In this document: positions 16,486 to 46,770 of the stretch, in pieces
Position numbering within the stretch: the stretch's first letter is position 1
Layout: each line of letters begins with the position of its first letter
The notes under the pieces: generated by a model
The model's input: the letters and a program-made list of their open reading frames with translations, nothing else
What the model was told of the DNA's origin: nothing
Databases searched by the model: none
Program-made: the position numbers and the translations under genes
NCBI RefSeq assembly: GCF_902652985.1
Contig: NC_047023.1
Span: 43,648,001-43,712,000 of the forward strand
From: Pecten maximus
Taxonomy: Eukaryota
Reading direction: 5' to 3'
Length of the DNA stretch: 64,000 nucleotides

Positions 16486-18626
16486 TTAATAGGAGCCTAT
16501 GATACAAACAGTGAAAAGGTGTACACATCAAGTTGAACAATTTACAATTATCTTATACATAGAAATGCAATTGGTTGAGAAGAAATTTTACTTTTGTTTG
16601 AATGACATATATGAAATATAATTTTAACAATCCTGGAAGGAAAATGAAGGACGGAAGAATGTACAACATTTATCAGTTATCAATTGTTATTACCTAGCTT
16701 TCCTTTACGTCTGGTACTGACGAACGACATTCCACCGCCTCCCATTCCGCCCATGGCCCCACCTCCCATTCCGCCCATTGAACCTCCTCCCATTCCGCCT
16801 ATGGCTCCACCTCCCATTCCGCCCATAGCCCCACCTGCCATTCCTCCCATAGATCCACCTCCCATTCCGCCCATCGCCCCACCTCCCATTCCGCCCATGG
16901 CCCCTCCTCCCATTCCGCCCATCGCTCCACCTCCCATTCCGCCCATGGCCCCTCCTCCCATTCCGCCCATCGCTCCACCTCCCATTCCGCCCATGGCTCC
17001 GCGTCCCATTCCGCCCATAGCTCCACCTGCCATTCCGCCCATAGCTCCACCTGCCATTCCTCCCATAGCCCCACTTGCCATTCCGCCCATGGCTCCGCCT
17101 GCCATTCCGCCCATAGCTCCACCTGCCATTCCGCCCATGGCTCCGCCTGCCATTCCGCCCATAGCTCCACCTGCCATTCCGCCCATAGCTCCACCTGCCA
17201 TTCCGCCCATGGCTCCGCCTGCCATTCCTCCCATGGCTCCACCTCCCATAGCACCACCTCCCATGGCCCCACCTCCCATAGCACCACCTCCCATGGCCCC
17301 ACCTCCAATAGCCCCGCCTCCCATTCCGCCCATGGCTCCGCCGCCCATAGCCCCACCTCCTATCATTCCACCACCCATACCCCCGCTTCCTATCATCCCT
17401 CCACCCATACCCCCGCTTCCTATCATCCCTCCACCCATAGCCCCACCTCCTATCATCCCACCACCCATACCCCCGCTTCCTATCATCCCACCACCCATAC
17501 CACCACCTCCCATCATGCCACCACCGATTCCATAAGTCGGTATGCCCCCTGTGGAGCGATAAAATGTCCAGCTATTTCCTGGTATCATTGCACACATCCC
17601 GCTAGATATCCCCCCACCGATTCCATAAAAAGGAATGGCGGTGCTGCTTATCATGCCGAAATCGCTGCCACCACCAGCCATTCCACTTCCGCCGGCCATC
17701 ATTCCACCACCAGCCATGCCACTTCCGCCGGCCATCATTCCGGCACCAGCCATGCCACTTCCGCCGGCCATCATTCCGGCACCAGCCATTCCACCGCTGC
17801 TAGACATTCCTCCACCACTGGACATCATCCCTGAACCGGCAGTGGCGGGGAATATTATACCTCCAGAGCCTCCCCCAGCCGCCCCAGCAGAACCTGACAC
17901 AATTTTGGTAATTGCCGATGGACCCTTACCTAAATAGCAAACCCGTCAACGTTTGTAATATTGTGATATACTGCACTCCTTTTCTACTAATTAATACAGT
18001 AGAGATAATAATGCAGCCAATATCAATTATGCGATTTTCGATATAAAAAGATAAGCAGATATCTATTGTCTATATATTTCCATAATGATAGAAACTTAAT
18101 GTGATCCTTCAGCACGATTGAAGCCCTCTGACAAGAGTGAATAATCCATTATGTCTTAGAAAGGTCTATCACGTATCAACCCGACAAACAACTTTTACTT
18201 AGCAGAGATAGTGTTAAAGGAATCATAATATATCGGATAATAAAATAAACATGGAGAATTATCTAAATGACCTGGTAAAAGAGTTCGTTTATATTCTACA
18301 TGAATGACATTTTAACGATGAGACGTAATTAGTTCTTGGTTAATATATTATTAGATGTTGATGAGGTCTGAGTTGTCGTTTATGTTTGAATGTTTTAAAG
18401 TAGTATGATCTGTCCTGAGTATATCCAGGTTATTGAGAGACTATGGTCTAAGCAGATATATTCGTATGCAACTTTTAATAGAGATAATTCCATCTCCGCC
18501 ACTGGGATTATTTATATAAATAAAGACGTTTGTATCCCTGAGTAATCTTTATCTGTACTTACCTCTGACAGTGCCAGTACATACCGCATAACAGAAGAGA
18601 AACGTTAACGCTAGATGGCGCCCCAT
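16486..18626 (-). CDS. Gene A: secreted Gly/Met/Ala-rich repetitive structural protein (abductin/ligament-like), 436 aa; coding exons 18626-18563, 17929-16694, 16496-16486
   Basis: Signal-peptide exon MGRHLALTFLFCYAVCTGTVRG (ag|AAAATG; donor G|gtaagt); phase-1 acceptor tttag|GT at 17929; repeats GGMAGGAM, GGMGGGAM and GGGAM with synonymous codon variation; donor G|gtaata at 16694 joins the terminal exon GSY* (atag|GC TCC TAT TAA). Total 1311 nt, in frame. Confidence 0.9.
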
Positions 18627-19455
18627 TTTCTAAAAATAAATTTCTGGCATTATTATAAACTAAGAGACTATCATGAAATAGAAATGTACAATAAATGCTT
18701 TGGATAACTTAGTGATGATGAGTCTTAAGGTGAATCTGTAATGTATCTATATCTATGTAAATACGCATTATAAAAAGACGTGGGCTTTATTACAGATAGT
18801 ATGGCAGATTGTTGATAAAAATGGGTTGTATGATTTATTAAAGTATGTCCTCACAAAGAAAAATAAAGCAAATATTTTATTTTGGTTAAGCATTTAAAGT
18901 ATTGTAATTTCAGAATACACGAGGTGTTAATGACTAAAGATTAGGGAAATCGAGGATTACTCTTGTACTGCTATTATTGATAATCAAGTAAATTAAGGGT
19001 TGGAGTTAGCGCATACAACCTATTTACTTTGTGTAATCATACCCGCATCAACAAAATGATCCATCAAATGTCAGCATTAATCACTCCAGCTCGAGTAATT
19101 GGTTTGTTTTAATTATATATAATAGTACACAATTTAATAGATCATTAACATCATTTCAGTTTGGACAATAAGAAAGCGTGAATGGATTATCCTGTTACTC
19201 CACAAAATAAAGGTATGCGAATGCATGCGATTATTGCACAGATACATATACGTAGAAATTGCAAGCACTTGTTTTAAGATTATGTGTTGTATGTTATAAA
19301 CTGAAGACTTTTCAAGAGCATGGTGAATACAATAACTTAGGAACACATTAAATTAATTTAGAAGCATTCAGTAAACATAAAGACAGTATAATTTGGTAAT
19401 TTATTTGTATTTAATGATATTATAAATGTATATTATAAACGTTCCTTTTCCTTAC

Positions 19456-19520
19456 CTGTTAATCGGACAGACGCTCCGACATGGATGTGGACGCGTTGTA
19501 TCTGATAAAGGATATTTATA
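19456..19520 (-). promoter_or_regulatory. Gene A TATA box (TATAAATA, 19520-19513) and short non-coding exon 1 (about 19490-19456)
   Basis: Strong donor CAG|gtaagg at 19456, 64 nt downstream of the TATA start; same geometry as gene B. Confidence 0.72.
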
Positions 19521-20090
19521 TGAACCAACAAGGAAGATATTTTACTATCTTAATTAAATGCTGTATCGAATGCATAAAAACTGTTTAAACATGCATGGGG
19601 ACCGTTGTCCCCTAACCTGTCGGCCCGCTAGACATGTCGAACAAGACAACATGACTACAGCCCATACTGATTATAATCAATGCAGTGGTCTGTGACAGCC
19701 GAATGATTTACTAAACCAGGCTTTTCTTCAAATTGAAATAATTGATCCTTGTGTATTTGGTATGATTCATTTCAAGTTTCTCTTTTTTTGTTTTAACAAC
19801 ATGCAGCAAACATGGTATAGTGGTGAGCTATAAAAACTACATTCGGCCCAACATGTCTCGATACATAAGTAAACAGTGACATTTTTACAGCATTAAACAT
19901 CCCCACAACAGTCGGGGTCACATGAGGACGGTAATGGCTACTATGGTTGTTTGTGACAGACAGAGACGTCTGGTAGATATTTTAAATCTGATTTCCTAGA
20001 AAGATATTTATAGAATGTTTGACTTCCTTCATCCATAACAGAAAGTACTGATCGATGTGCTCTAACAATGAATACCATTAGAGTACATCT

Positions 20091-21035
20091 TTATAGCTTC
20101 TGGGTAATTACTGTGAATGTCTCAGGGATATTTATAACTTCTGGGTAATTACTGTGAATGTCTCAGGGATATTTATAGCTTCTGGGTAATTACTGTGGAT
20201 GTCTCGGGGATATTTATAGCTTCTGGGTAATTACTGTGGATGTCTCGGGGATATTTATAGCTTCTGGGTAATTACTGTGGATGTCTCGGGGATATTTATA
20301 ACTTCTGGGTAATTACTGTGAATGTCTCAGGGATATTTATAGCTTCTGGGTAATTACTGTGGATGTCTCGGGGATATTTATAGCTTCTGGGTAATTACTG
20401 TGAATGTCTCGGGGATATTTATAACTTCTGGGTAATTACTGTAAATGTCTCAGCGATATTTATAGCTTCTGGGTAATTACTGTGAATGTCTCGGGGATAT
20501 TTATAGCTTCTGGGTAATTACTGTGTATGTCTCAGGGATATTTATAGCTTCTGTGTAATTACTGTGGATGTCTCGGGGATATTTATAGCTTCTGGGTAAT
20601 TACTGTGAATGTCTCGGGGATATTTATAGCTTCTGGGTAATTACTGTGGATGTCTCAGGGATATGTATAGCTTCTGTGTAATTACTGTGGATGTCTCGGG
20701 GATATTTATAGCTTCTGGGTAATTACTGTGGATGTCTCGGGGATATTTATAGCTTCTGTGTAATTACTGTGGATGTCTCGGGGATATTTATAGCTTCTGG
20801 GTAATTACTGTGAATGTCTCGGGGATATTTATAGCTTCTGGGTAATTACTGTGAATGTCTCGGAGATATTTATAGCTTCTGGGTAATTACTGTGTATGTC
20901 TCAGGGATATTTATAGCTTCTGTGTAATTACTGTGGATGTCTCGGGGATATTTATAGCTTCTGGGTAATTACTGTGAATGTCTCGGGGATATTTATAGCT
21001 TCTGGGTAATTACTGTGAATGTCTCGGGGATATTT
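20091..21035. repeat. 41-bp minisatellite (TTTATAGCTTCTGGGTAATTACTGTGGATGTCTCGGGGATA), ~23 copies
   Basis: Direct periodicity. Confidence 0.96.
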
Positions 21036-22124: not shown

Positions 22125-22385
22125 ATTATTGTTATTCATTATTAGTATAAATTATTGTTATTCATTATTAGTATAAATTATTGTTATTCATTATTAGTAT
22201 AAATTATTGTTATTCATTATTAGCATACATTATTGTTATTTATCATTAGTATAGATTATTGTTATTTATTATTAGTATAAGTTATTGATATTTATTATCA
22301 GTATAAATTATTGATATTTATTATTAGTATAGATAATAGTTATTTATTATAAGTATTTTTTTTGTTATTTATTGTTAGTATAGGC
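22125..22385. repeat. 26-bp AT-rich minisatellite, ~10 copies
   Basis: AATTATTGTTATTCATTATTAGTATA periodicity. Confidence 0.88.
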
Positions 22386-23437: not shown

Positions 23438-23595
23438 ATTTTCAACAGATTACTTGCATAGCCAAAGGAACAAAAATAGCCCCTCTGTTGGCCGATGTTT
23501 TACCGATGTTGAGTTAAGGGCCTGTTATAATGTCGGATATATATAAGAAAAAGAAATCTGTTCTTGCGAAGGTGAATGCATAAAAAATAACAAAA

Positions 23596-23750: not shown

Positions 23751-24677
23751 TGTTATCTTTTATATATATATACAAACATCTAGGTCTATGGGTATGACAT
23801 TCTTGTTTAGAGATGGCCAATTCTAAACTTTTCGAGGCCTACTGAGTTGTGAGTTTTCATTAGATGATAATATTAGTTAATGATTAGGTATTTTTTTAAA
23901 CAATACATGTGTACATGCAATGTGCAGACTAACATTTTTTGAGGTCCAAATGTACTTAGAAAGCTTCTCTTTACAAACCACCTTGTCCGGTTCTTCTGTG
24001 CTTGCTTGCGTTGCTTTTATAGACAGATTTCACTGCATTTTCTTCCAGCAAATGGTGCACACTCAATTTCTTTTTTTCTAAATGTGTGTAGTGAGCGTTC
24101 AGGTACCATAAAATCTCGGTATTCCTAGTTAGCGAGGTCATATTCGAGTATTCAAAGTAACCGAACATATTGTTATACAGAGTTTAAGCATCACTGCAAT
24201 ATAGACTTTGTGAAAGAAACTCGGGGTGAACTGAAAGTTTGTAGGGGCAGAACAGCATTCCGAATTAAATAGACAAAATCGCATTATTGTGTAGAGACAA
24301 AATTCGATACACACTAGCATCAATTTTCTTCAACATAAATGACACAACTTTAAAAAATTGAAATATTATAGCAGTAATGTCTTTGGTGATATGATGAATA
24401 AACAAATTGATAAAAATTCTTATCAATCAATTAGAGTGTCTAATTAACAACACAGTATATTCATTCACCGAAGTTAATGATGATGGTACCTTTTTTAAAG
24501 GTCTTGACGTTTTAAGAAGTTAATCATTTCCAATATTCCACATGTCGCTTTGACAGAGACGTCATAACCAATAGACGCCATATTGACAGCACAGAAGGTC
24601 TATATAACAAATAACTATAATATAATTTTAGATGCGCTGTGGCTGACTACTAAAGTATATAATTCGTAAAAGACATT

Positions 24678-25468
24678 CTTTAGGTTCAGTTAATGTGTCT
24701 TTAGAATCCGTTGACGTGTCTTTAGATTCCGTTGGTGTGTCTTTAGAATCCGTTGACGTGTCTTTAGATTCAGTTAATGTGTCTTTAGATTCAGTTAATG
24801 TGTCTTTAGATTCCGTTGATGTGTCTTTGGATTCAGTTAATGTGTCTTTAGATTCAGTTAATGTGTCTTTAGATTCCGTTGATGTGTCTTTAGATTCCGT
24901 TGATGTGTCTTTAGATTATGTTGATGTGTCTTTAGATTCCGTTGATGTGTCTTTAGATTCCGTTGATGTGTCTTTAGATTCCGTTGACGTGTCTTTAGAT
25001 TCCGTTGACGTGTCTTTAGATTCCGTTGATGTATCTTTAGATTCCGTTGATGTGTCTTTAGATTTCGTTGACGTGTCTTTAGATTCCGTTGACGTGTCTT
25101 TAGATTCCATGGACGTGTCTTTAGATTCCGTTGACGTGTCTTTAGATTCCGTTGATGTGTCTTCAGATTCCGTGGACGTGTCTTTAGATTCCGTTGATGT
25201 GTTTTCAGATTCCGTTGATGTGTCTTTAGATTTCGTTGACGTGTCTTTAGATTCCGTTGACGTGTCCTCAGATTCCGTTGACGTGTCTTTAGATTCAGTT
25301 GATGTGTCTTTAAATTCCGTTGATGTGTCTTTAGATTCCGTTGACGTGTCTTTAGATTCCGTTGACGTGTCTTTAGATTCCGTTGATGTGTCTTCAGATT
25401 CCGTTGACGTGTCTTTAGATTCCGTTGATGTGTCTTTAGATTCCGTTGACGTGTCTTTAGATTCCGTT
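24678..25468. repeat. 21-bp minisatellite (TCTTTAGATTCCGTTGATGTG), ~38 copies
   Basis: Direct periodicity; source of the VSLDSVD and STESKDT pseudo-ORFs. Confidence 0.93.
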
Positions 25469-26828
25469 GTTATCATAAACAGGTCATCGCCTTTATCTGA
25501 TCTAGTGTATCGGTTGTTGTTGTTGATTCACTCTTCTGGAGCACCTGGTCATATTCTCTATATAGTTTAGGGGTCCCTTAATTTATCTATGTTTTGTTTC
25601 AATGCTTTTAGTTAAGATATTGTTCTCGTTTTTGCCATCGGTATTCCATGTGTTTTAGCGTTCGTTTTGTCGATTCTGAGTCACGGTTCACTTATCACTC
25701 GGTATTCTTAATCCAGCATTTCCTAACAGGTATCGCTATTATAAATACTCGGGACATGTTGTATGCCTTATACAGGGGTATACATATAATGTGAGCAACA
25801 TGTATATTTCTCATTGTGGATCAATCCCCTTCTCATCTAAAACTATTATAATACATTACAAGTGAACTATAATATTAGTGATAGCTATTAGTCATCATGC
25901 ATTTTGTCAGTTATGATTCTCCGAAGGAAATAGAAAAGAAACCAATCTGAGTATGATTGTGGTGGTTAAGTAAATTTTAGACAACATGGCTTTCAGATGA
26001 GTTGCAAAAGTTACTGGTGGGATATATAATATGTTCCTGAGCATTTTGGAGCATCCAAATACAGATTGAGACTCGTTTCAGAGTATCTACATTATATCTA
26101 CAGCTCTATTGTAATTAAGGTATTTAAATCTGGTTATATATTTAACCTTAACATTACATCTACAGCTCTAGTGTAATAAAGGTATTTAAATATGGTTATA
26201 CATTTAACCTTAACAAACTTCACTGAAAGGAACGACATTCTCATCGATATCAGCTGGTTTTCTAGTTATCTGTGATTTCTTTGCAATCAATTAAAAAAGT
26301 GTTATTTATTTGACAAATTAAAATATATACAGTATATATGTAATCCTTTGAGATCGCTATCTTATAAACTTGTATTGTATTCACGTCGTTTAATTTTTAA
26401 ACTTTCAAACAAATTTTGTTCGATTTTGTGCAAAACGTTATACAATATAGTTTAACACCTAGAGCCGAGTCATTGTTCTCCTCGTTCTAAGTGTGACGAA
26501 GTACATTGTTTGTATATATCCAAGTTCGTATTCATACTCATGTCTGTCCATAGTGTTATAACCCGAATAGGAACTTTATATAGTGACACTTCAGCGCTAA
26601 TGTAAGTATATATTGATGTTCGTCTTGTGTTATATGTTTTAAAGAAATGGTTCGATACACAAAATCAATAAGAAAATCGATATTTTTTCTGGCAATGACG
26701 TTTGTTTTTAATAATTTAACTGGTATATATAACACATATAGGTCTTGTTACAAAGGATTATATCTGAGGCATTGTTTGTCCTGTTCATCCGTGCGTCTTC
26801 TTTACTTCCGGTCCAGAGAGATCCATAT

Positions 26829-28630
26829 TTAATAGGAACCTAAAATGTAGACGGAGGAAAGTTTTATTAACATTGAAGACTTGGCCAGAAGGGTGAATCT
26901 TAAAATTGTCGTTCATTTTAAATTGTTGTCGACGTTAAGATTTAAAAAAAAATCATAGATGTTGTCGTAGATATGTCAGATATTCTTTATCTTAAAGAAA
27001 TTGAACAAAATATCAATTATAGAATTATCATGGCTATATAACGATTAGATTAAATTAAACAATATCATTAAAAAGAGTGTTCCATTACCTTTCTTTTTTC
27101 CACTGATGCTGATGGCGGGTCCAGCTGAGCCCATGCCTCCCATGGAACCCATGCCGCCCATGGAACCCATACCTCCCATACCACCCATACCTCCCATACC
27201 ACCCATACCTCCCATACCGCCCATACCTCCCATACCGCCCATACCACCCATGGAGGAACTGCCTCCCATTGATCCCATACCTCCCATTGATCCCATTGAT
27301 CCCATACCTCCCATTGATCCCATACCTCCCATAGAACTCATACCTCCCATAGAACTCATCCCTCCCATAGAACTCATTCCTCCGCTCATACCTCCCATGG
27401 CACTGCTGCCCATTGATCCCATGCCTCCCATACCTCCCATACCTCCCATTCCGCCCATTCCGCCCATTCCTCCCATACCGCCCATTCCTCCGGTAGCACC
27501 CATGGAGCCCATACCTCCCATGGAACCCATACCTCCCATGGAACCCATACCTCCCATAGAACTCATACCTCCCATAGAACTCATACCTCCCATAGAGGTC
27601 ATACCGCCAGTAGATCCCATACCTCCCATAGAGCTCATACCGCCCATTCCTCCCATACCTCCCATAGAGCTCATACCGCCCATACCACCCATACCTCCCA
27701 TAGAACTCATACCTCCCATAGAGCTCATACCGCCTGTAGATCCCATACCTCCCATAGAACTCATACCTCCCATTGAGCCCATGCCTCCCATACCGCTCAT
27801 ACCTCCCATAGAGCTCATACCACCACCAAAGGGATATGACGAGTAGACTGTAGAGTATATGGGAGTTCCTATGGACATTGAGTGGCGTTTGTAATAAATT
27901 GATCCACTGCTTGATGGCATTTGCCAGGGTGACATGCTAGAGCTTCGTCTGTTGTACCAGTTATACCATGGTGACGTCATTGCTGACATTCCACTTCCGC
28001 TCCCTGACCAACCGGATCCTGAGCCTGTATAAGATAAAGTAGTCTTAACACATAGTCTCTACATCTGATCCTGGCAATAAGGTATTATATCTATAACAGA
28101 CAAATATGTAAGTAGAGGAGGAAATCTACAAGTATCCTTATCAAATATCCGAAAGTTATACTACCTCACAAATTAAAAGATATATACTTTGCTAATAGTT
28201 TAGCCTTGTTTTATCAAATTTAGAATTTCGGTAACATGTCTGTATCCTCCACCTATGTGTATGTATGTTTGGTTATGGCTCTTGAGATACTTAACCTATG
28301 TTGCTACCCTAGAAATACGCCAAGCTTATACTTCTACTTGAGCCAAGTATCATTGCCATTATGGCTATCCCTACATACGCCTTCGCATGAGTTTTGAGAT
28401 AGTCCACATGTATCTATATAATGTCAATAACACATCTTCTATAATCAGTCTTCTATAACTGTTTATAATAAACATAGAATGTTATAATAATGTATACAAT
28501 ATATTATGATATTTTAAGAGTTTTAAGTGGAAAAGGGGGTATGTCTGTCCAAACAGTTCTCACCCCAGAACGTGCCCATTCCTGGCTGGGCGACATAGCA
28601 GGCAAGTATCGCGGCGATCAACAGCATCAT
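26829..28630 (-). CDS. Gene B: secreted Gly/Met/Ser-rich repetitive structural protein (paralogue of gene A), 337 aa; coding exons 28630-28564, 28024-27089, 26839-26829
   Basis: Signal-peptide exon MMLLIAAILACYVAQPGMGTFWG (cag|AAAATG; donor G|gtgaga); phase-1 acceptor acag|GC at 28024; GGM, MGGMSS and MGGMGS repeats; donor AAAG|gtaatg at 27089 joins the terminal exon GSY* (tttag|GT TCC TAT TAA). Total 1014 nt, in frame. Confidence 0.9.
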
Positions 28631-30247
28631 TTTCTGGAAAAAAAATACGAAATAATTTGTACGTGAAGCTGATATACCGATGATTTTTTTTTAAACAATC
28701 ACGAGTAAATGTCAATCCGTTTGTACCTCTTCAATGGTCTCCGTATAAATCTATACTTTTTGTTCGTTTTTGCTCTCATCTGATCAATTGTGAGTTACAA
28801 TTACAGATTCATTTTAATATAGGTCTGATGTTTCCGTAAAAGACCAACGATTTATTTGGAAAATTAATTTACATGTATTTTGGGGGAAGTTTGATGCCTT
28901 GAATTTTTATTTAAACGTTTACATCATATTGCACTGTCTTGAGCATTGAATGTCAGGAAATACAGCAAAGTTAAATGATAGTGAAACAAGCCTGACAGTT
29001 GACGGCAACACATAAATGTCAACTGAGTAATGATCTAAAAGTCAGTTTTTAGACTACGATAAATATTACAGCTCGCCGTTAGCTGATGAAGTATTTGTAA
29101 CTGATTATTTCTACACAACAGAAGCTTTCTGACAATAGAAAATAAATCGTAACTACAGATTGTATCTACTCGATGGTATTTGTTTTTGGGAATCTGCGTT
29201 TACTAGAATATTTACTGATTAACGCATATTTATTTTTGTTTTGACATCAAAATGTATTACTTGATAAAGATAAAATATGTTTTTCCAAAGAACAGGCTTA
29301 ATAAGAATTTTACTTATGACGAAGCCAGTTAATATACCCTAATTTGTCTCGACGTTGTGTCTTAATATACCTTAACCAGTTAAATCAGATTGTATGTTAT
29401 GAATAACAAATATGTATACATATATACTCCTTCTGGGAATAATGAAGATGGCTTGATCAGTTTCTAATTGGAAATCATTTCCTCGTGTTCAGTTTTTACC
29501 TACAGAGAATTATAATTTCTTGAAGACAGGTAAATATTAGAATACACCACGGTCCTACACGAACTGAATCCTGATTAAGTTTTACCATTATGGTTTTGTT
29601 TTACTTTGATATGAACTGGTTTTCCCGATGTTGAACACTATAGTGATAAACCTTACAAATTCTGGTTTTAATTCATAATAAAAACCAATATGTAACATCC
29701 TCTATTCTGACATTGATTAATATGTCTAGATGTACAGTTCATTTCACGTGAGTAACATTAAGTGTTTTATGTCCAAAACGTTTACGAATACCAATACTAA
29801 GAGATAAAGTGGGTTCATACCTCAAATACAAAGTATACGTGTTTAGTTTGATCATGCTAATCATTTATACAAAATGAGTGGTTTAGTAATAATTAAATAA
29901 ATGATACAATCTTGTTCTGAAGTCAGCTGTCAAGTATCATTTACGAACGGAAAGTAAATATGGCGAAAATATTGTCATATCATTTTTAATGACACATAGC
30001 TTCACTTCAAGATTTGGTATTAATCTTGTTATCTCAATCCCAGGTGAAATATATGTATCACTTATTGTTCTAAGATATAACAATAATCATATATGTTTCA
30101 CCTGATAGCGAAAGTATTTACATACCATATAGGTATTACTTAAAAACTAAATATATTAATTTACAATGTTAATTATACGTAGATTATTTATATACCTAAT
30201 TACCTAAGAACTATATACTAATGATTTAGTATAACAGTTTGTCTTAC

Positions 30248-30313
30248 CTTTGTCTTGAGGGATTCGGACTTGCTGGAACTGTGAAGTCAACCTCAGAGAG
30301 GGGTCCCTTTATA
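30248..30313 (-). promoter_or_regulatory. Gene B TATA box (TATAAAG, 30313-30307) and short non-coding exon 1 (about 30282-30248)
   Basis: Donor AAG|gtaaga at 30248, 65 nt downstream of the TATA start; Inr-like CACAGTT about 30 nt after the TATA. Confidence 0.72.
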
Positions 30314-35499: not shown

Positions 35500-37119
35500 A
35501 TACTACATAACTTAACAGGCTGTAGGAGACAATAGATAGTTCTGGTGTCGTGTCTACATAACTTAACAGGCTGTAGGAGACAATAGATAGTTCTGGTGTC
35601 GTGTCTACATAACTTAACAGGTTGTAGGTGACAATAGATAGTTCTGGTGTTGTGTCTACATAGACTACAGGGAGACAATAGATAGTTCTGATGTTGTGTC
35701 TACATAGACTACAGGGAGACAATAGATAGATCTGGTGCCGTGTCTACATAGACTACAGGGAGACAATAGATAGTTATGGTGTCGTGTCTACATAGACTAC
35801 AGGGAGACAATATATAGTTCTGGTGTCGTGTCTACATAGACTACAGGGAGACAATAGGTAGTTCTGGTGTCGTGTCTACATAGACTACAGGGAGACAATA
35901 GATAGTTCTGGTGTCGTGTCTACATAGACTACAGGGAGACAATAGATAGTTCTGGTGTCGTGTCTACATAGACTACAGGGAGACAATAGATAGTTCTGGT
36001 GTCGTGTCTACATAGACTACAGGGAGACAATAGATAGTTCTGGTGTCGTGTCTACATAGACTACAGGGAGACAATAGATAGTTCTGGTGTCGTGTCTACA
36101 TAGACTACAGGGAGACAATAGATAGTTCTGGTGTCGTGTCTACATAGACTACAGGGAGACAATAGATAGTTCTGGTGTCGTGTCTACATAGACTACAGGG
36201 AAGACAATAGATAGTTCTGGTGTCGTGTCTACATAGACTACAGGGAGACAATAGATAGTTCTGGTGTCGTGTCTACATAGACTACAGGGAGACAATAGAT
36301 AGTTCTGGTGTCGTGTCTACATAGACTACAGGGAGACAATAGATAGTTCTGATGTCGTGTCTACATAGACTACAGGGAGACAATATATAATTCTGGTGTC
36401 GTGTCTACATAGACTACAGGGAGACAATAGATAGTTCTGATGTTGTGTCTACATAGACTACAGGGAGACAATATATAATTCTGGTGTCGTGTCTACATAG
36501 ACTACAGGGAGACAATAGATACAATGTAGTTCTGGTGGCGTGTCTACATAGACTACAGGGAGACAATAGATAGTTCTGGTGTCGTGTCTACATAGACTAC
36601 AGGGAGACAATAGATAGTTATGGTGTCGCGTCTACATAGACTACAGGGAGACAATAGATGGATCTGGTGTCGTGTCTACATAGACTACAGGGAGACAATA
36701 GATAGATCTGGTGTCGTGTCTACATAGACTTCAGGGAGACAATCGATAGTTCTGGTGTCGTGTCTACATAGACTACAGGGAGACAATAGATAGTTATGGT
36801 GTCGTGTCTACATAGACTACAGGGAGACAATAGATAGATCTGGTGTCGTGTCTACATAGACTACAGGGAGACAATAGATAGTTCTGGTGTCGTGTCTACA
36901 TAGACTACAGGGAGACAATAGATAGATCTGGTGTCGTGTCTACATAGACTACAGGGAGACAATAGATAGTTCTGGTGTCGTGTCTACATAGACTACAGGG
37001 AGACAATAGATAGTTCTGGTGTCGTGTCTACATAGACTACAGGGAGACAATATATAGTTCTGGTGTCGTGTCTACATAGACTACAGGGAGACAATAGATA
37101 GTTCTGGTGTCGTGTCTAC
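35500..37119. repeat. 44-bp minisatellite (GGAGACAATAGATAGTTCTGGTGTCGTGTCTACATAGACTACAG), ~36 copies
   Basis: Direct periodicity; the first three units are a longer variant. Confidence 0.96.
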
Positions 37120-38454: not shown

Positions 38455-39425
38455 GTGTTTTTCAGTTTTGAAACGTGGAACATAATTGCGTTCATTGATG
38501 TTCTCAGTTTTAAAGCGTGAAATATAAATATGTTCCTTGTAGTTCTCAGTTACAGAACGTGAAATATAAATATGTTCCTTGTAGTTCTCAGTTACAGAAC
38601 GTGAAATATAAATATGTTCCTTGTAGTTCTCAGTTATAGAACGTGAAATATAAATATGTTCCTTGTAGTTCTCAGTTACAGAACGTGAAATATAAATATG
38701 TTCCTTGTAGTTCTCAGTTACAGAACGTGAAATATAAATATGTTCCTTGTAGTTCTCAGTTACAGAACGTGAAATATAAATATGTTCCTTGTAGTTCTCA
38801 GTTACAGAACGTGAAATATAAATATGTTCCTTGTAGTTCTCAGTTACAGAACGTGAAATATAAATATGTTCCTTGTAGTTCTCAGTTACAGAACGTGGAA
38901 TATAAATATGTCCCTTGTAGTTCTCAGTTATAGAACGTGAAATATAAATATGTTCCTTGTAGTTCTCAGTTACAGAACGTGAAATATGGATATGTTCCTT
39001 GTAGTTACATGTATCAGTTACAGAACGTGAAATATAATGTTCCTTGTAGTTCTCAGTTACAGAACGTGAAATATAAATATGTTCCTTGTAGTTACATGTA
39101 TCAGTTACAGAACGTGAAATATAATGTTCCTTGTAGTTCTCAGTTACAGAACGTGAAATATAAATATGTTCCTTGTAGTTACATGTATCAGTTAAAGAAC
39201 GTGGAATATATATGTAAATATGTTTATTGCGGTTCTCTGTCATTAAAGTTTTCAGTTTTAGAACGTGGAATATAAAGGTGTTCATTGTAGTTTTCAGTTT
39301 TAGAACGTGGAATATAAAGGTGTTCATTGTAGTTTTCAGTTTTAGAACGTGGGATATAAAGGTGTTCATTGTAGTTTTCAGTTTTAGAACATGGAATATT
39401 AAGGTGTTCGTTGTGGATCTCAGTT
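38455..39425. repeat. 42-bp minisatellite (AGAACGTGAAATATAAATATGTTCCTTGTAGTTCTCAGTTAC), ~22 copies
   Basis: Direct periodicity. Confidence 0.94.
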
Positions 39426-39439
39426 TGAGGATTTGATAT

Positions 39440-40757
39440 AGATGTACATGAGACAAAGACAAGATGTACATGAGACAAAGACAAGATGTACATGACACAA
39501 AGACAAGATGTACATGAGGCAAAGACAAGATGTACATGACACAAAGACAAGATGTACATGACACAAAGACAAGATGTACATGAGACAAAGACAAGATGTA
39601 CATGAGACAAAGACAAGATGTACATGAGACAAAGACAAGATGTACATGAGACAAAGACAAGAATACATGAGGCAAAGACAAGATGTACATGAGACAAAGA
39701 CAAGATGTACATGAGACAAAGACAAGAATACATGAGGCAAAGACAAGATGTACATGAGACAAAGACAAGATGTACATGACACAAAGACAAGATGTACATG
39801 ACATAAAGACAAGATGTATATGAGACAAAGACAAGATGTACATGACACAAAGACAAGATGTACATGAGGCAAAGACAAGATGTACATGAGACAAAGACAA
39901 GATGTACATGACACAAAGACAAGATGTACATGAGACAAAGACAAGATGTACATGAGACAAAGACAAGATGTACATGACACAAAGACAAGATGTACATGAG
40001 ACAAAGACAAGATGTACATGAGACAAAGACAAGATGTACATGAGACAAAGACAAGATGTACATGAGACAAAGACAAGATGTACATGAGACAAAGACAAGA
40101 TGTACATGAGACAAAGACAAGATGTACATGAGACAAAGACAAGATGTACATGAGACAAAGACAAGATGTACATGACACAAAGACAAGATGTACATGACAC
40201 AAAGACAAGATGTACATGACACAAAGACAAGATGTACATGAGACAAAGACAAGATGTACATGAGACAAAGACAAGATGTACATGAGACAAAGACAAGATG
40301 TACATGAGACAAAGACAAGATGTACATGAGACAAAGACAAGATGTACATGACACAAAGACAAGATGTACATGAGACAAAGACAAGATGTACATGAGACAA
40401 TGACAAGATGTACATGACACAAAGACAAGATGTACATGAGACAAAGACAAGATGTACATGAGACAAAGACAAGATGTACGTGAGACAAAGACAAGATGTA
40501 CACGAGACAAAGACAAGATGTACATGAGACAAAGACAAGATGTACACGGGACAAAGACAAGATGTACATGAGACAAAGACAAGATGTACATGAGACAAAG
40601 ACAAGATGTACGTGAGACAAAGACAAGATGTACGTGAGACAAAGACAAGATGTACATGAGACAAAGACAAGATGTACATGAGACAAAGACAAGATGTACA
40701 TGAGACAAAGACAAGATGTACATGAGACAAAGACAAGATGTACATGAGACAAAGACA
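39440..40757. repeat. 22-bp minisatellite (AGATGTACATGAGACAAAGACA), ~60 copies
   Basis: Direct periodicity; all three minus-strand frames give the same peptide. Confidence 0.97.
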
Positions 40758-41059: not shown

Positions 41060-42140
41060 ATGGAATACCTGGAATTGTCCTAGATTTATACGCAGGATAT
41101 CGTCAATAAACCGGGTACCCGTACAGATTACTTAGAATTGTCCTAGATGTACATTGTATATGGTGGATGTCGTCAATAAACCGGGTACCCGTACAGATTA
41201 CTTAGAATTGTCCTAGATGTATACGGTGGATGTCGTCAATAAACCGGGTACCCGTACAGATTACCTAGAATTGTCCTATATGTATACGGTGGATGTCGTC
41301 AATAAACCTGGTACCCGTACAGATTACCTAGAATTGTCCTAGATGTATATGGTGGATGTCGTCAATAAACCGGGTACCCGTACAGATTACCTAGAATTGT
41401 CCTAGATGTATATGGTGGATGTCGTCAATAAACCTGGTACCCGTACAGATTACCTAGAATTGTCCTAGATGTATATGGTGGATGTCGTCAATAAACCGGG
41501 TACCCGTACAGATTACCTAGAATTGTCCTAGATGTATATGGTGGATGTCGTCAATAAACCGGGTACCCGTACAGATTACCTAGAATTGTCCTAGATGTAT
41601 ATGGTGGATGTCGTCAATAAACCGGGTACCCGTACAGATTACCTAGAATTGTCCTAGATGTATATGGTGGATGTCGTCAATAAACCGGGTACCCGTACAG
41701 ATTACTTAGAATTGTCCTAGATGTATACGGTGGATGTCGTCAATAAACCGGGTACCCGTACAGATTACTTAGAATTGTCCTAGATGTATATGGTGGATGT
41801 CGTCAATAAACCGGGTACCCGTACAGATTACCTAGAATTGTCCTAGATTTATACGGTGGATGTCGTCAATAAACCGGGTACCCGTACAGATTACTTAGAA
41901 TTGTCCTAGATGTATATGGTGGATGTCGTCAATAAACCGGGTACCCGTACAGATTACCTAGAATTGTCCTAGATGTATATGGTGGATGTCGTCAATAAAC
42001 CGGGTACCCGTACAGATTACCTAGAATTGTCCTAGATGTATATGGTGGATGTCGTCAATAAACCGGGTACCCGTACAGATTACCTAGAATTGTCCTAGAT
42101 GTATATGGTGGATGTCGTCAATAAAGCGAGTGTCCGTACA
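41060..42140. repeat. 63-bp minisatellite containing the palindrome CGGGTACCCG, ~17 copies
   Basis: Direct periodicity. Confidence 0.96.
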
Positions 42141-42675
42141 GAACACCTGTAATAATTTTACCAGTATGTTTTTCGTGTTTTCCCTCGTTTAATATGTTTT
42201 ACACCATTGGTGTTATCTAAGCCATAATTTGCAGTGTGGAGGATAAATTAAACCGTTTATTTCCTCTCTGAAAATGTCCTGATTTGAGAACTTTTTGATG
42301 ATACGTAGGCATTGGAATATTTTTATTTTATATCAACGACAAATTCTTGATAAGAGGACTATTACAGAACCAGATGATAATGACAGGTGTCACGGGTGAT
42401 GATAACTGGTTGTTAATGATAGTTGATAATACTCTTAGGTAGATTGGGTCATTTGACAGAATACAGGTGTTGTTTTGATTGCACAGGCTCCGTAGACCTT
42501 TTGTACTTTATCATACTTCATTGTTCCTCTATTAGGTTACTATAAATAATACCCAGCTACGAGCAAATTGGCTCGTTTTTCCTGTAACATGTCCCTTGAT
42601 TTATAACTAACAGACATTAAAGAAGAACAAACAAATTGTACGTTTTTAATTCATGTTTATAACTATAATTAATAA

Positions 42676-45600
42676 TCATTTTCGATCGTCGTCATCATTA
42701 TCACCTGAATACGCGGATGCATTCCATCCTCCAGAAGAAAACGATCCTCCACCACCACCAGATGTACCATGCTTTCTTCCGAATGACCAACCACTTGATC
42801 CAAAGGCGGAACTTCCACTTCCGCTCATACCGGAACTCCAAGAACCGGATGAACCGGAACCCCCACTACCACCACTTGAGCCCCAGGAACCGCCACCTCC
42901 CATCCCAGATGATCCAAAGCCACTACCTCGTGAACCACCCAGAAGGGCTTTAAGTATTAGGGTGTTGCCCCCGGACCCACCTTCCGCCTTTTCGGCTCCC
43001 GAATCTAACATCTGTGACAGAGCTTTGTATGTAAGTAGATTAGTTAAGATATTGTTTGAGTTGAATATACCAGTATTGCTTTGTTTGCCTCCCGTCGTTT
43101 GCCTTCCACCAGAGCCGCCTTGGAATCCTGTTGTAGATCCCCTATTAAATGCAGTAGAAGTACTAGAAGACCAATTAGGAAAACCGCCATTCATTCCCCT
43201 TCCTGTAAACTGACGGTTTCCACGGAAACCGTTATTTATTCCAAACCCAGTATGTTGCATGTTGGTGTTAAATGGACCTCGATTAATTCCGAAGCCACCT
43301 CCTGTGAATCTATCATGTCCTCCAGTTCCAAATCTACCGCTGTAGCTTTGCCATCCGTCGTAACCTATGTCTCGTCCATAGCCTGTGTACATACCATTAT
43401 TGAGGTAATAAACACCCCTATCCGACATTCCACGACCCCTGCCACCGCCGATGTTCCATTGATTTGTGCCTCCATGCGCACCACCACCAAACATAAATCC
43501 TTTTGGAGTATAACCGTTCATGTGGAAGCTAAGTTTACCACCTCTCATTAATCCAGTGTTTCCGCCATTTCTTCCCCATCGTTTACCACCGGAAAACCCT
43601 ATAGGAAACGTTACACCTCCTCCACCTCCACCGCCTCCGCCACCACCTCCGCCTCCGCCTCCACCTCCACCACCACCTCCACCACCACCACCTACAGCAA
43701 CACTGACACCAGTACCGAAACCTCGACGGAATCCTGTGAAACCATTGCTACCACCGCCGCCGCCTCCACCACCACCTCCACCGCCACCACCACCAGCAAA
43801 AAGGATCCCGTTTCCAGGTACAACTCCGGGAAATTTTCCGCCAAATCCTCCTATGGGGAAGCTTCCAGAAACTCCGCCTCCAGCTCCACCACCACCGCCG
43901 CCACCGCCACCGATACCAACACCAATTCCGCCACCCTGCATTCCAGTAGCGGGCACACCTGTAAATCCACTCCCCGTTGATTCCAACAAAGCTCGCAGAC
44001 CTCCTTGCTTCTGAACTGGTGAACTTTGGGAACTACTTCTCGCGTCAGAACTTCCGGTTGCGCCAGCTTTTTGTACTCCACTCATATCACTACTACTTTT
44101 GATGAAAAAGTTGTTATGAACTTGAGTCGGACTGCGTTGAGACTGTGGAATCGGCGGCGGCATATGTGGAATCGGTGGCGGCATTTGTGGAAACGGTGGT
44201 GGCATCTGTGGAATTGGCAGTGGCATCTGTGGAATTGGCAGTGGCATTTGTGGAATTGGCGGCGGCATTGGATTTGAGGGTAAAATGATTTTTGTATTCT
44301 GTTTGCTCGTTTGCATTATTTTTTGAAAGTTAGGGACCTGTTGAAATATTTCCTGTTGCCCCGGGAGAGTTTGAGGTAGTTCATATACCTGCTGGTAGAC
44401 GGTCTCTTGCATATTTGGTAGCGTCGCGTGAACCGGTATATGGGAACTGAATCTATTGTTTAATAGAAATTTTCTGTCTTCAGGAATAGACGTCATTGCT
44501 ATGGGTCGGATGTTTTTGTCGACTAAGTCTACAAAAGAGAAAAGTGTGAATATCATAATTTACTTTCAATAACGACAGATTCAAAACTAACTATAAGATG
44601 CACACAAGAGTAAAACATTTGAGTGATTTCCATTTCACACATGATCTAGGAACATCGTCGGCCAAGTATTGTCCGAGTAATGCATGAAGGCATGGCGTTA
44701 ATCGTGACGTAAAAATGTAGTTGTTTCGACTTCATCTTTTTAATTTTCATTATTTTAACTGTTTTTGTTTCGCTATACCGTAATACACATGTACGACCTT
44801 TAGTATCCATGATTAAGTGTGAACGATATCACGTCGATTGGTGTAAAAGGTATATTACTCATTGTGATACAGTATATTAATTACTTAAATGTAACAATAT
44901 ATAACGTCTTATATTTATTATAGTTTAACACTAATACACAATCCAAGTCTATGATATATTTTGCTATGTAGTTATAGAGTTTAACAGGTTTTTGTAATCT
45001 TGGACATAGATTGCCGTATCTCAAATTGCCAGCTTTGCTAGCCGAGTGTGTTGAGTACGATACTCTTCTTCTCCTCCCTTTTTATAGGGAGTATCGTATT
45101 GGACACCTTAGCTAGCGAGGATGCCCAATTGTACGTTTTAAGACAGTCTATATTTATCTTTCTTCTATACTATTAACAAATATACATATACATATTGGTC
45201 ATTTAAGGAAGGAATGGAGTCAATGGCCATTTAAGAATGACATTTCAGAATGACATTTCGCTTGTCCTATCGCAAGCAGGTTCATAGCTTCTGGTCGTTT
45301 TACCTGACATCAGAATAATCCAGATTCTTGTTGCCCAGTCTGAGGGTCAGACAGGGAACAAAAATTACCATTTAACAACGTGGGTACGTTACAGTCTCGG
45401 AGACCTCCTCACAAACGTTCGAATCAAACGCCAAAATGAGGCAGTGTGAAGGGAGACATTAAGTCAGTTGCCTCAAGCAATCATGTAATGGGAACAGCAG
45501 GTACAATTCTTACTTCTGGGATTATTTGAATAATGGAATAACCCTACTTACCCGACAGTGCCACCTTGGAATCTACCATTATCACGTGATACCCCAGGCA

Positions 45601-46688
45601 TAACATTAGTAGCAATGATGGCGATATTCTCCTAAAAAAAGACGAAAATGGCATTTATTAGTTTATATATGTTTTAGCGTACTACTGAAGTAAATGGGTT
45701 CAGCAAGCAATTAAGTGGCGCAAACAAATATCTAATCTAGAAAACAATATATAGGAACCTTTAGCGAAGACATAGTCTAAGACACTATTGCCATAATATC
45801 CGGTAAAATATTCCCGAGTAAAGAAATTAATTAAAACGAACGATAACTTTTTATGTTCATTCAAAAAGATTATTCTCAGTATACGCGAAGTTTCTTGGAA
45901 AAAAGTGAACCCACTCTTTTTACAACTTTTACAATACCAATGATGGTCAATCTCAGTTCATTCTATTTTGTCGATTCAATGATGCAATCTTTTTTTTCTA
46001 TTATGTTGGAAATTGAAATATCAACTTATAACTAGTTAATATAATAATCACTATGCCGTTAGTATAACCATGAATGTAATCGTTTATTTATCTAAAATGC
46101 TAATATTAAAGATGTTGAACGTATTTGCTCGACTCGTCGCTCTGTTCATTAGTACGTAATCAATAATAACAAATAATTTCAGCTTAATGGGGAGCATTGT
46201 GAAGGGAGCAACTGTTTAGAAAACCGTCTGGTTTACAAAAAATGTAGAAGATGATGGTAAAAATTGTATTTTGCCGGATGAAATATCCACCTTTTGATAT
46301 CATTAATTTTGAAAGCATAGTTTTGAACATTTTAAATCTACTTATATAATAAACAAAATAGTCGGTAAAAGCTCAGTCGTTTTAAGATTACTAAATCTAA
46401 TTTTAATACTACGTTTAACTAAAAAAATGTTATTTCAAAGAAAACTATTGATATCACTTTGTCGATAAAAACCTATCTAAATGCATTTATAATTATTATT
46501 ATTTATTTGAAAAAGTCATCCGGAACAAGAGCGAAATAAATTAAATTTATAAATACGATATTTATACAATATGTCTAGATTTTAGAATTAACATAATTTT
46601 ATACACGTTTTATTATTAATGAAATACTATATTTTGATAAAAGCTCAGGATTTTCACGGAATAATAAACCCCCATTGTCTTACCTCAT
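42676..46688 (-). CDS. Gene C: secreted modular glycine-rich structural (matrix-type) protein, 645 aa; coding exons 46688-46684, 45631-45552, 44528-42676
   Basis: ATG AG|gtaag at 46684; 80-nt exon completing the signal peptide MRRISPSLLLMLCLGYHVIMVDS-KVALS (ag|G ... G|gtaagt); phase-1 acceptor tttgtag|AC at 44528; 1853-nt open exon with PQMPPPI repeats, G8/G15/G26 runs, a G/F/Y/R domain and a G/S tail ending DDDDRK*. Total 1938 nt, in frame. Confidence 0.9.
45036..45120. mobile_element. Short foldback/MITE in gene C intron 2
   Basis: TGCTAGCCGAGTGTG...TACGATACTC is complementary to GAGTATCGTA...CACCTTAGCTAGC. Confidence 0.6.
45197..45514 (-). mobile_element. Old degenerate SINE copy in gene C intron 2
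   Basis: GGTCATTTAAGGA (tail) and AGCAGGTACAATTCTTAC (head) match the reverse complement of 54020-54551. Confidence 0.65.
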
Positions 46689-46770
46689 ATTGTCGCCTAG
46701 CTGCCACGACTAGCCGCACGAACGCACTGTCAAACTAGTGAAGAAGTTTTTTCTTTAATGCCATATTATA
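46684..46770 (-). promoter_or_regulatory. Gene C exon 1 and candidate core promoter
   Basis: Inr-like GACAGTG near 46730; TATA-like TTAAAGA (46758) or TATAATA (46770) upstream. Confidence 0.5.

Follow-up and report, generated by a model that had tools for sequence, protein, structure and literature searches.

A 64,000-nucleotide stretch of the Pecten maximus genome (NC_047023.1, positions 43,648,001 to 43,712,000; hereafter the window) carries three co-oriented minus-strand genes, called A, B and C here. They raise the question of whether scallops possess further relatives of the ligament protein abductin, and whether such neighbouring genes contribute to one material. Abductin is, to our knowledge, the sole natural protein rubber that works in compression. 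Two reviews trace it to an Argopecten irradians cDNA (Cao, Wang and Bayley 1997; described in PMC9999432 and PMC13052691). Its precursor has 136 aa and the mature protein about 116 aa. Abductin is defined by the repeating decapeptide GGFGGMGGGX (PMC9999432). According to the reviews, high Met is a hallmark of the ligament type, essentially one short abductin cDNA type is known, and its cross-links are unidentified (PMC9999432, PMC13052691); dityrosine, quinone or Lys-Met sulfilimine links have been proposed in the literature, none of them proven.

Structure of the three genes

The ORF list of the window contains large low-complexity minus-strand ORFs at 16680-17900, 27045-27989 and 42676-44556, all three where the first-pass annotation had placed them. 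For each gene, that annotation also described a brief opening exon, a separate exon for the signal peptide followed by a phase-1 intron, and a single large exon of low complexity. Flanking sequence, splice sites and translations bear out this plan, as does RNA for B. A and B have in addition a terminal micro-exon that encodes Gly-Ser-Tyr-stop. Comparison of the models with the ORFs agrees with the earlier claim that the list misses every signal peptide as well as the true C-termini of A and B (Gly-Ser-Tyr-stop). All three models are complete and stop-free, with canonical GT..AG introns, as read from flank sequence and translation. Splicing is RNA-confirmed for B and predicted for A and C, and signal peptides were judged by hydrophobicity alone. 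The features are as follows (a slash in a sequence marks the exon border).

19513-19520, minus strand: A, predicted TATA-like box TATAAATA, read directly, about 30 nt upstream of predicted exon 1
19456-19490, minus strand: A exon 1, 5′UTR, by analogy with the RNA-confirmed exon 1 of B; donor CAG/GTAAGG; 5′ end approximate
18563-18629, minus strand: A exon 2, predicted; ag/AAAATG start, signal peptide MGRHLALTFLFCYAVCTGTVR, phase-1 end G/GTAAGT
16694-17929, minus strand: A exon 3, predicted; 412 codons, phase-1 end CTAG/GTAATA
16365-16496, minus strand: A terminal exon, predicted; B (RNA-confirmed) and three canonical abductin genes have theirs at the same position and in the same phase
30307-30313, minus strand: B, TATA box TATAAAG; contigs extend as far as 30273, some 35-40 nt downstream
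30248-30273, minus strand: B exon 1, 5′UTR, the part covered by contigs; joint 28633/30248 in all four runs
28564-28633, minus strand: B exon 2; ag/AAAATG start, signal peptide MMLLIAAILACYVAQPGMGTFW, phase-1 end; both borders RNA-confirmed
27089-28024, minus strand: B exon 3; 312 codons, phase-1 end; contig coverage exon-only
26689-26839, minus strand: B terminal exon; joint 26839/27089 in runs X1, X2 and X7; contigs end near 26689
46764-46770, minus strand: C, predicted TATA-like box TATAATA
46684-46740, minus strand: C exon 1, predicted; 5′UTR and ATGAG, start codon 46686-46688, donor GAG/GTAAGA; 5′ end approximate
45552-45631, minus strand: C exon 2, predicted; remaining signal peptide MRRISPSLLLMLCLGYHVIMVDSKVALS, phase-1 end CGG/GTAAGT
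42676-44528, minus strand: C exon 3, predicted; modular low-complexity protein

RNA shows that B is transcribed, and its splicing agrees exactly with the model. Its transcript contigs, found in four runs and stemming from two or three studies, are confined to the exons, with joints at 26839/27089, 28024/28564 and 28633/30248 and GT..AG on the minus strand. The junction check against RNA that had been suggested for this locus, run on B, thus matched all three introns to the base. Of the 13 differences between transcript and genome, ten affect the third position of Gly codons and are synonymous. Transcript and genome also differ twice in length, by 3 nt and by 135 nt, with the frame preserved each time. 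B occurs in runs from one study of 2014 and in two samples of a single study of 2020; from these dates alone, we infer that they may correspond to two published P. maximus mantle RNA-seq sets (PMC7191990).

The B protein, which starts at the ATG at 28630, has 337 aa with about 37.1-39 % Gly, 23.7-24 % Met, 19.9-21 % Ser, 1.9 % Pro, 2.5 % Tyr and 0.6 % Phe. A signal peptide (Kyte-Doolittle mean 3.0) is followed in exon 3 by a Trp/Tyr-rich N-terminal knob (SPWYNWYNRR ... IYYKRH ... TPIYSTVYSSYPF), then by a repeat core of about 245 residues built from MGGMSS (8 copies), MGGMGS (13 copies) and MGGMGG, and finally by AGPAISISGKKK. The coding part of the terminal exon (26829-26839) completes Gly-Ser-Tyr-stop, with the stop at 26829-26831, so that the protein ends in GKKKGSY; ATTAAA lies in the 3′UTR at 26707-26712.

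A is longer (436 aa; start codon at 18626) and contains about 46.6-48 % Gly, 17.9-19 % Met, 12.8-13 % Ala, 1.2 % Pro, 1.2 % Phe and 1.0 % Tyr. Its exon 1 holds a 7-codon uORF, provided that the transcript start lies upstream of 19482. The hydrophobic core of the signal peptide has a Kyte-Doolittle mean of 2.2. Exon 3 encodes, in order, a Lys-bearing N-terminal stretch, an aromatic knob (IPFYGIGGG ... IPTYGIGGG), a repeat core and STRRKGKL. The core comprises about 275 residues of GGMGGGMIG, GGGAM, GGMAGGAM (9 copies) and GGMGGGAM (6 copies), with a 24-nt unit present 21 times. Eleven nucleotides of the terminal exon (16486-16496, stop at 16486-16488) complete Gly-Ser-Tyr-stop, which gives the C-terminus RRKGKLGSY; AATAAA lies in the 3′UTR at 16383-16388, and the 3′ end is approximate.

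The repeats exceed chance, because their TRF scores are high (716 for the 24-nt unit of A, 505 for the 18-nt unit of B) and reversed control patterns of the back-translated motifs had 0 matches genome-wide. Tandem repeat analysis also showed that unstable minisatellites abound in this region.

A and B beside the abductin genes of the same genome

The back-translated GGFGGMGGG pattern had 8 matches genome-wide (reversed control 0), all of them at C8:22.777-22.835 Mb, and no match within the window. They mark three canonical abductin genes at C8:22.777, 22.786 and 22.834 Mb, on another chromosome than A and B. One of these, abd1, has 175 aa and carries Tyr4, Cys6, Cys10 and Tyr20, the residues conserved in the Ala-rich N-terminus of Argopecten abductin (PMC13052691). 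A and B are not abductin proper or its orthologues: they lack the decapeptide, lie on a different chromosome and, with 337-436 aa against 136-175 aa, are two to three times longer.

The similarities are nevertheless of several kinds. Like abductin, A and B are predicted to be secreted and to form random coil, are dominated by Gly and Met, have almost no Pro in their repeats and are practically free of acidic residues (0-1 in the mature proteins, pI about 10), and end in a Tyr preceded by Lys. In abductin, Gly makes up about 58-60 % of residues, Met is abundant, Pro contributes about 1 %, and polar or charged residues are few; A and B are of the same type in other proportions. Gly accounts for 39-48 % of A and B compared with 60-63 % of the canonical C8 proteins, Met 18-24 % compared with 12-14 % and Phe 0.6-1.2 % compared with 5-7 %, with Ala (in A) or Ser (in B) in place of Phe and Asn. 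The earlier description of A and B as abductin-like, Phe-poor variants with Ala or Ser substituted therefore fits, both in Phe content (1.2 and 0.6 %) and in the exon plan described below.

A and B further differ in their aromatic non-repetitive knob, which abductin lacks, in a repeat core devoid of Lys where abductin repeats contain GGK, and in a micro-exon that reads G-S-Y instead of G-Y. Lys and Tyr are confined in both proteins to the N-terminal knob and the last seven residues; the Gly/Met core that separates these ends, 245-275 residues long, is uncharged. The N-terminal cysteines and tyrosines (Cys12, Tyr13 and Cys16 in A; Cys11 and Tyr12 in B) depart from the conserved abductin pattern and resemble it loosely, as does C-Y-A-V-C in the signal peptide of A beside C-L-A-V-C in abd1.

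The likeness extends to gene structure. A, B and the three canonical abductin genes have a common four-exon plan, consisting of a UTR exon, a phase-1 signal exon, a Gly/Met exon and a Tyr-stop micro-exon. The hydrophobic N-termini of A and B, from which secretion is predicted, sit on a separate exon (RNA-confirmed in B). A phase-1 intron after the signal peptide is common among secreted proteins. In all five genes, the Gly/Met exon ends in Lys codons plus one base, AAR (NNN) G/GTAxxx, the last intron measures 167-409 nt, and a phase-1 intron precedes the terminal micro-exon G-(S)-Y-stop, a junction confirmed by RNA in B. Between A and B themselves, ag/AAAATG opens exon 2 in both genes, and the terminal exons agree at 11 of their first 13 nt.

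Could this agreement have arisen by convergence? A and B would then be an independent young low-complexity family, made Gly/Met-rich by replication slippage, and the exon plan a general trait of secreted Gly-rich genes in scallops instead of a sign of common descent. Beyond compositionally driven repeats, sequence comparison found nothing alignable, whether A and B were set against the abductins or against each other, and the abundance of unstable minisatellites also suits such an origin. Protein searches and the Atlas gave no homologue of A or B; these blanks say little, however, because the protein searches were blind to P. maximus's own proteins and returned not even self matches. Against convergence stands the joint agreement of all five genes in Lys codons, phase-1 donor, short last intron and Tyr-stop micro-exon. 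Additionally, a genome-wide pattern census located extended secreted Gly/Met repeat genes at three places only: within the window, in the abductin cluster on C8 and, as a single B-like gene, on C12. We consider convergence improbable, and A and B are probably divergent paralogues of the abductin genes.

Hinge ligament or shell framework

In our best explanation, A and B are tandem paralogues within an extended abductin family and encode secreted, intrinsically disordered structural proteins rich in Gly and Met, whose likeliest site is the hinge-ligament complex; we hold it with about even confidence. The proteins would be secreted by mantle epithelium. Their Gly/Met core would behave as a random coil, acting as an entropic spring or as an insoluble compliant matrix, and the Lys- and Tyr-bearing ends may be covalently cross-linked. 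Replacement of Phe by Ala in A or by Ser in B would alter hydration and stiffness. The resilium has a published composition of 58 % Gly (PMC9999432), which the canonical genes, at 60-63 % Gly, suffice to explain; A and B cannot therefore be among its main components. Within the hinge-ligament complex, they could occupy a layer outside the rubbery core or form a minor component of the core.

That canonical abductins alone explain the composition of the resilium also favours a site elsewhere. A role in the shell or periostracal framework is nearly as likely as one in the hinge-ligament complex. In the corresponding reading, which we regard as possible but tentative, A and B are not ligament proteins but Gly-rich, basic, insoluble scaffold proteins of shematrin/KRMP type from the general mantle, tanned via C-terminal basic residues followed by Tyr, with Met replacing the usual Tyr or hydrophobic residue. 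Shematrins and KRMPs, known from Pinctada and with relatives reported in Mytilus, are likewise secreted, basic, Gly-rich and repetitive, and their C-terminal RnKmY signature (RKKKY, RRKKY, RRKY; PMC3896809) recalls the ends RRKGKLGSY of A and GKKKGSY of B. In A and B, however, Gly-Ser (plus Leu in A) separates the basic run from the terminal Tyr. Shematrins and KRMPs belong to the prismatic shell layer, and their repeats combine GnY with a hydrophobic residue and contain little Met, whereas A and B have no GnY domain: their repeats carry Met, and their Tyr (1.0 and 2.5 %) lies outside the repeats.

Met-rich insoluble proteins occur in nacre, prisms and ligament alike in Pinctada (PMC7591529), and A and B as framework proteins would parallel those found throughout the three shell microstructures of Pinctada. 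The Pinctada fucata proteins LMP, NU-5 and MRNP34 resemble A and B as Met-rich, low-complexity, insoluble matrix proteins of ligament or shell. LMP, from the ligament, differs in its MMMKPD repeats of Met, Lys, Pro and Asp with little Gly, and NU-5, with (D/N)MGGMGPGP repeats, in its length of >1,800 aa and its acidic regions (PMC7591529); both lack the repeat units and the terminal Gly-Ser-Tyr of A and B.

The dates of the runs containing B fit bulk-mantle RNA-seq, and such samples need not contain the hinge isthmus, which is also consistent with a framework role. On the other side, a Met content of 18-24 % is the ligament-type hallmark of the reviews, and the comparison of gene plans covered A, B and the P. 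maximus abductin genes. Scallop shell is foliated calcite, a material for which no matrix protein rich in Gly and Met turned up in the literature searched.

Gene C and a possible wider family

The third gene encodes 645 aa with 26.7 % Gly, 11 % Ser and 6.5 % Pro, and its coding sequence is split by an intron directly after ATGAG (ATG at 46688). In order, exon 3 encodes a segment rich in Gln, then MP(P/L)P(I/F)P(Q/H) repeated six times and poly-Gly runs of 9, 15 and 26. A region of Gly, Asn, Arg, Phe and Tyr comes next, followed by one of Ser and Gly, and the protein closes with the acidic sequence DNDDDDRK-stop. C is single-copy in the P. maximus genome, had no homologue among 1.84 billion proteins and matched no Pfam family.

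The first-pass annotation proposed that the three genes may form one co-regulated material kit. C would then be a mineral-facing or adhesive partner of an elastic A/B network: DNDDDDRK is a possible Ca-binding tail, and the Pro-rich and poly-Gly modules can be invoked as well. The genes share orientation, sit inside 30 kb of sequence where no further gene was recognised among them, and have the same succession of UTR/ATG exon, phase-1 signal exon and single large low-complexity exon. C, however, has no terminal micro-exon, and sequence comparison found nothing shared with A or B. Adjacent genes are frequently unrelated. The promoters of A, B and C have no common 7- to 10-mers (sharing is at or below shuffled expectation), so adjacency and orientation are the whole basis for co-regulation. 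We consider such a kit unlikely. To judge from its sequence, C is an unrelated, lineage-restricted, secreted Gly/Pro/Ser-rich orphan that adjoins A and B, position being the sole link.

A and B look like undescribed relatives of the natural rubber protein abductin. They offer ready-made sequence variants for probing which residues set resilience and hydration, and their layout points to the Lys/Tyr ends as cross-linking sites. Variants of this type could explain differing mechanics among ligament or shell layers. The terminal Tyr micro-exon provides a gene-structure marker for tracing homology where biomaterial genes are of low complexity and resist alignment.

More speculatively, scallops may have an abductin superfamily instead of a single rubber protein, descended from one ancestral gene with a putative cross-linking cassette of Lys and a terminal Tyr on its own phase-1 micro-exon, and diversified by repeat turnover. 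If so, its chemically distinct elastomers would comprise the Phe/Asn-type canonical abductins, the Ala-type A, the Ser-type B and the B-like gene on C12, and their use in different layers of hinge or shell would adjust hydration and stiffness. Shematrins and KRMPs may then owe their RnKmY ends to this cassette as well, and the Gly-rich structural proteins of pteriomorphs would be one lineage.

Gene models in the window

The window, at C9:43,648,001-43,712,000 of the Pecten maximus genome, has a GC content of about 35% and is dense in minisatellites. Each of its three GC-richer islands coincides with a long minus-strand ORF whose composition is extreme. We read the flanks of these ORFs, and the exon sets proposed in the first-pass annotation were joined and translated by script. 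Each set yielded a complete, stop-free coding sequence with canonical GT..AG introns, which confirmed the observation of three genes, here called A, B and C.

Low-complexity genes of the window
Gene A, minus strand: 436 aa; G 46.6%, M 17.9%, A 12.8%; GGMAGGAM x9, GGMGGGAM x6
Gene B, minus strand: 337 aa; G 37.1%, M 23.7%, S 19.9%; MGGMGS x13, MGGMSS x8, MGGMGG x18
Gene C, minus strand: 645 aa; G 26.7%, S 11%, P 6.5%; six MPxPxPQ repeats; poly-Gly runs of 9, 15 and 26; acidic end DNDDDDRK

A, B and C each encode their hydrophobic N-terminus on a separate small exon that ends in phase 1, one base into a codon. The big exon of A and B also ends in phase 1, right after Lys codons (...RRKGKL in A, ...GKKK in B), and an 11-nt coding micro-exon located 197-249 nt downstream completes Gly-Ser-Tyr-stop. 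Gene C has no terminal micro-exon. As had been claimed, the ORF list lacks the signal-peptide exons of A, B and C and the micro-exon ends of A and B, as can be seen from the flanks and the translations. The splice models of A and C are predicted from strong splice consensus and frame continuity, and that of A is further backed by its complete parallelism with B. The predicted junctions are 18563/17929 and 16694/16496 for A, and 46684/45631 and 45552/44528 for C.

The predicted 5′UTR exon of gene A (window 19462-19485, minus strand) contains a short uORF (ATG TCG GAG CGT CTG TCC GAT TAA), which the transcript would include only with a start site further upstream. Some 35% of the 64-kb window, about 22.7 kb, consists of non-coding minisatellite arrays. 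Their units measure 16-63 bp and are repeated as many as 94 times, with identity reaching 99%. Most long spurious ORFs come from these arrays, which also occupy the stretches separating A, B and C.

Minisatellite arrays (window positions; others are present)
1-3102
3751-4995
7027-9006
12975-16332
20090-21035
24677-25469
35630-37119
38472-40757
41155-42142
55203-58652

Gene C is plausibly a secreted modular matrix protein, as predicted from its model. It belongs to no Pfam family and has no paralogue in the genome; a search of 1.84 billion representative proteins gave no credible homologue, only one spurious Logan ORF (E = 2.8e-4). Sequence similarity to A or B was not found by blastn, and the promoters of the three genes have no common k-mer above shuffled expectation. 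What links C to A and B is position and orientation only, and the three-gene "kit" suggested in the first-pass annotation is an unproven candidate.

Transcripts of gene B

In seven sequencing runs of the same organism we found 9-20% of the sampled words of the gene B stretch, which is approximately its exonic share. Contigs from four of the seven runs were placed on window 26700-30400. They cover exons only, and depth is zero in all intron bins except one. In that bin, 30048-30171 in intron 1, the depth comes from run X2 alone, whose contig carries a loose end of 255 nt and may represent an alternative first exon, a fragment that escaped splicing or a dispersed repeat.

Splice joints of gene B in RNA (window positions, minus strand)
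26839/27089
28024/28564
28633/30248

Each joint reads CT..AC on the plus strand, that is, GT..AG on the minus strand, and all three lie exactly at the predicted sites, so the proposed splicing of B holds. Runs X1 and X7 evidently represent a single data set deposited twice, which leaves two studies and three samples as independent support for the joints. The contigs stop near 26689, about 20 nt beyond an ATTAAA.

Single-base differences between transcripts and genome are mostly synonymous (10 of 13, at the third position of Gly codons), and both length differences, of 3 nt and 135 nt, preserve the frame. These two were seen in X2, one of the 2014 runs, where the repeat array is 135 nt shorter in frame (27428-27564) and the N-terminal knob has an in-frame 3-nt deletion (27912). 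They reflect either polymorphism in repeat length between alleles or collapse of the repeats during assembly.

Exon-only coverage, the joints, the synonymous bias and the frame-keeping indels together establish that gene B is a real, spliced, protein-coding gene. The alternative, that the stretch is not a gene or is a pseudogene, was rejected; for B it is ruled out by the spliced transcripts and the synonymous-biased variation.

Relation to the abductins

Scallops are the source of abductin, and the first-pass annotation had described A and B as abductin-like. The defining abductin repeat is GGFGGMGGGX (PMC9999432; PMC13052691). Back-translated and searched genome-wide, this pattern has 8 matches, all on chromosome C8 (22.777-22.835 Mb). 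The window has none, and a reversed control pattern also gave zero. Since the repeat occurs only on C8, A and B are not abductin orthologues. In the proteins encoded at the three C8 loci, Gly accounts for 60-63%, Met for 12-14% and Phe for 5-7%. The first of them, abd1, is 175 aa long; its N-terminus starts MNTYICLAVCLVAAVSAAGY and has the same Tyr4, Cys6, Cys10 and Tyr20 as Argopecten abductin (PMC13052691).

Canonical abductin genes
G000:C8:22,776,075-22,836,026 (L021, L027, L028): three genes within 58 kb; first, minus strand; second and third, plus strand

Additional Gly/Asn-rich exons (GYGSGSGNGFGNGGGNGF...) lie upstream in L027 and may be of the same gene or of a neighbour.

The plan of the C8 genes closely resembles that of A and B. 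Exon 2 of abd1, the gene for which upstream exons were read, starts a few bases before the ATG, encodes the signal peptide and ends in phase 1; exon 2 of both A and B opens ag/AAAATG. The signal peptide of abd1 contains C-L-A-V-C, that of A C-Y-A-V-C. In 3/3 C8 genes the whole Gly/Met domain is on one exon, which ends ...GGA AAA G/GTA, with a Lys codon ahead of the phase-1 donor. Gly-Tyr-stop is then completed by a micro-exon (GA TAC TAA, GA TAT TAG or GT TAC TAG) that lies 167-409 nt downstream, whereas A and B, otherwise of the same plan, end in Gly-Ser-Tyr-stop. The terminal exons of A and B (GCTCCTATTAAAC vs GTTCCTATTAAAT) are identical at 11 of 13 nt.

The five Gly/Met genes all agree in the position and phase of the micro-exon, in the Lys before it and in the Tyr that closes the protein. 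It is rare in general for a terminal exon to contain just two or three codons, and together with this agreement that rarity argues for common descent of A, B and the abductins. The gene plan is the best evidence available here for such descent. It is not proof, since blastn found no similarity outside the GGN/ATG repeats among the genes compared and phase-1 signal exons are common. "Abductin-like" is appropriate for gene architecture and chemistry but not for strict membership, there being no GGFGGMGGGX in the window.

Protein databases were queried with single exons rather than joined spliced proteins. The whole exon of B gave compositional matches only (phage lysozyme, algal and bacterial hypotheticals), and neither the N-terminal 150 residues of A nor the first 100 residues of B had a match. 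The ESM Atlas returned nothing usable for A and C, and Pfam had no match to A, B or C. The queries' own proteins were also absent from the results, so the blanks are weak evidence on whether other scallops have orthologues. Own-genome matches to the A exon are minisatellite artefacts, not paralogues.

Genome-wide searches with MGGMGGMGG and with the A-repeat pattern recovered the window genes, and a further B-like gene was found on chromosome C12.

B-like gene outside the window
C12:17,347,009-17,347,500 (L049:4009-4500), plus strand: signal peptide, MGGMSG/MGGMGG repeats in one exon, GSYYYRTYR knob

Its frame is broken at a GGGG run near L049:4437, by an assembly homopolymer error or because it is a pseudogene; read in the shifted frame, the exon reaches a GTAAGA donor in phase 1, and a terminal micro-exon was not identified. 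The MGGMGGMGG loci on C16 and C17 (Met-rich ORFs with short GGM runs only and no signal peptide) and on C15 (a short GGM run inside a Cys-rich ORF) were left out of the family, and the remaining such loci have no Gly/Met-rich ORF. By this census, the family members are A, B, the C12 gene and the three abductin genes on C8. No other secreted Gly-rich gene was seen in six 10-kb pieces sampled from the flanks of the window. The closest upstream gene that could be recognised, at C9:43.608-43.638 Mb on the minus strand (L060:1-945, L061:9699-9998), is voltage-gated K+ channel-like, with T1/BTB-like and transmembrane exons, and is unrelated to the cluster.

Composition, candidate roles and novelty of A and B

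Compared with abductin, A and B are 2-3 times as long and Phe-poor (A 1.2%, B 0.6%); Phe and Asn of abductin are replaced by Ala and Ile in A and by Ser in B. A has a single acidic residue, an Asp, and B has none; the pI of both is about 10. Lys and Tyr occur exclusively in an N-terminal region and within the seven C-terminal residues. Part of the former is an aromatic "knob" (A: IPFYGIGGG ... IPTYGIGGG; B: SPWYNWYNRR ... IYYKRH ... TPIYSTVYSSYPF), and between the ends lies an uncharged Gly/Met core of 245-275 residues, which offers trypsin hardly any cleavage sites. Judged from the sequence, this layout is as would be expected for a network chain tied at its ends only. In canonical abductin, in contrast, Lys recurs within the repeats, while the cores of A and B have none.

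By analogy with abductin (PMC9999432; PMC13052691), A and B would be secreted by the mantle epithelium and their Tyr- and Lys-bearing ends would be cross-linked oxidatively. The same analogy suggests that the Gly/Met core may be a hydrated random coil, which would provide entropic elasticity or a compliant insoluble matrix.

Words of gene B occur in four runs of one 2014 study and in two samples of one 2020 study, and are nearly absent from runs of 2015, 2017, 2018 and 2022. These dates agree with those of the published mantle sets, namely Artigaud 2014 and two mantle samples of the genome specimen (PMC7191990). The run dates make mantle expression of B a reasonable but tentative inference.

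The published resilium composition is 58% Gly (PMC9999432). The canonical C8 genes already meet this value. With 48% and 39% Gly respectively, A and B cannot be among the main constituents of the rubbery core. Candidate sites are another ligament layer, a minor role in the ligament, or a shell or periostracal framework; ligament use is an unproven candidate. The candidate outside the ligament, the framework, gains strength from the C-terminal RnKmY signature of shematrin/KRMP (PMC3896809) and from the presence of Met-rich insoluble proteins in all three Pinctada microstructures (PMC7591529). The Pinctada ligament protein LMP was rejected as a relative of A and B, as its sequence consists of MMMKPD repeats (PMC7591529).

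In the literature searched, no paper prints the repeat units of A or B, and the repeat strings match GroEL tails and abductin reviews only. These reviews know one sequence type (PMC9999432; PMC13052691). A and B are thus undescribed in the literature and databases that could be searched, the latter having returned no self matches.
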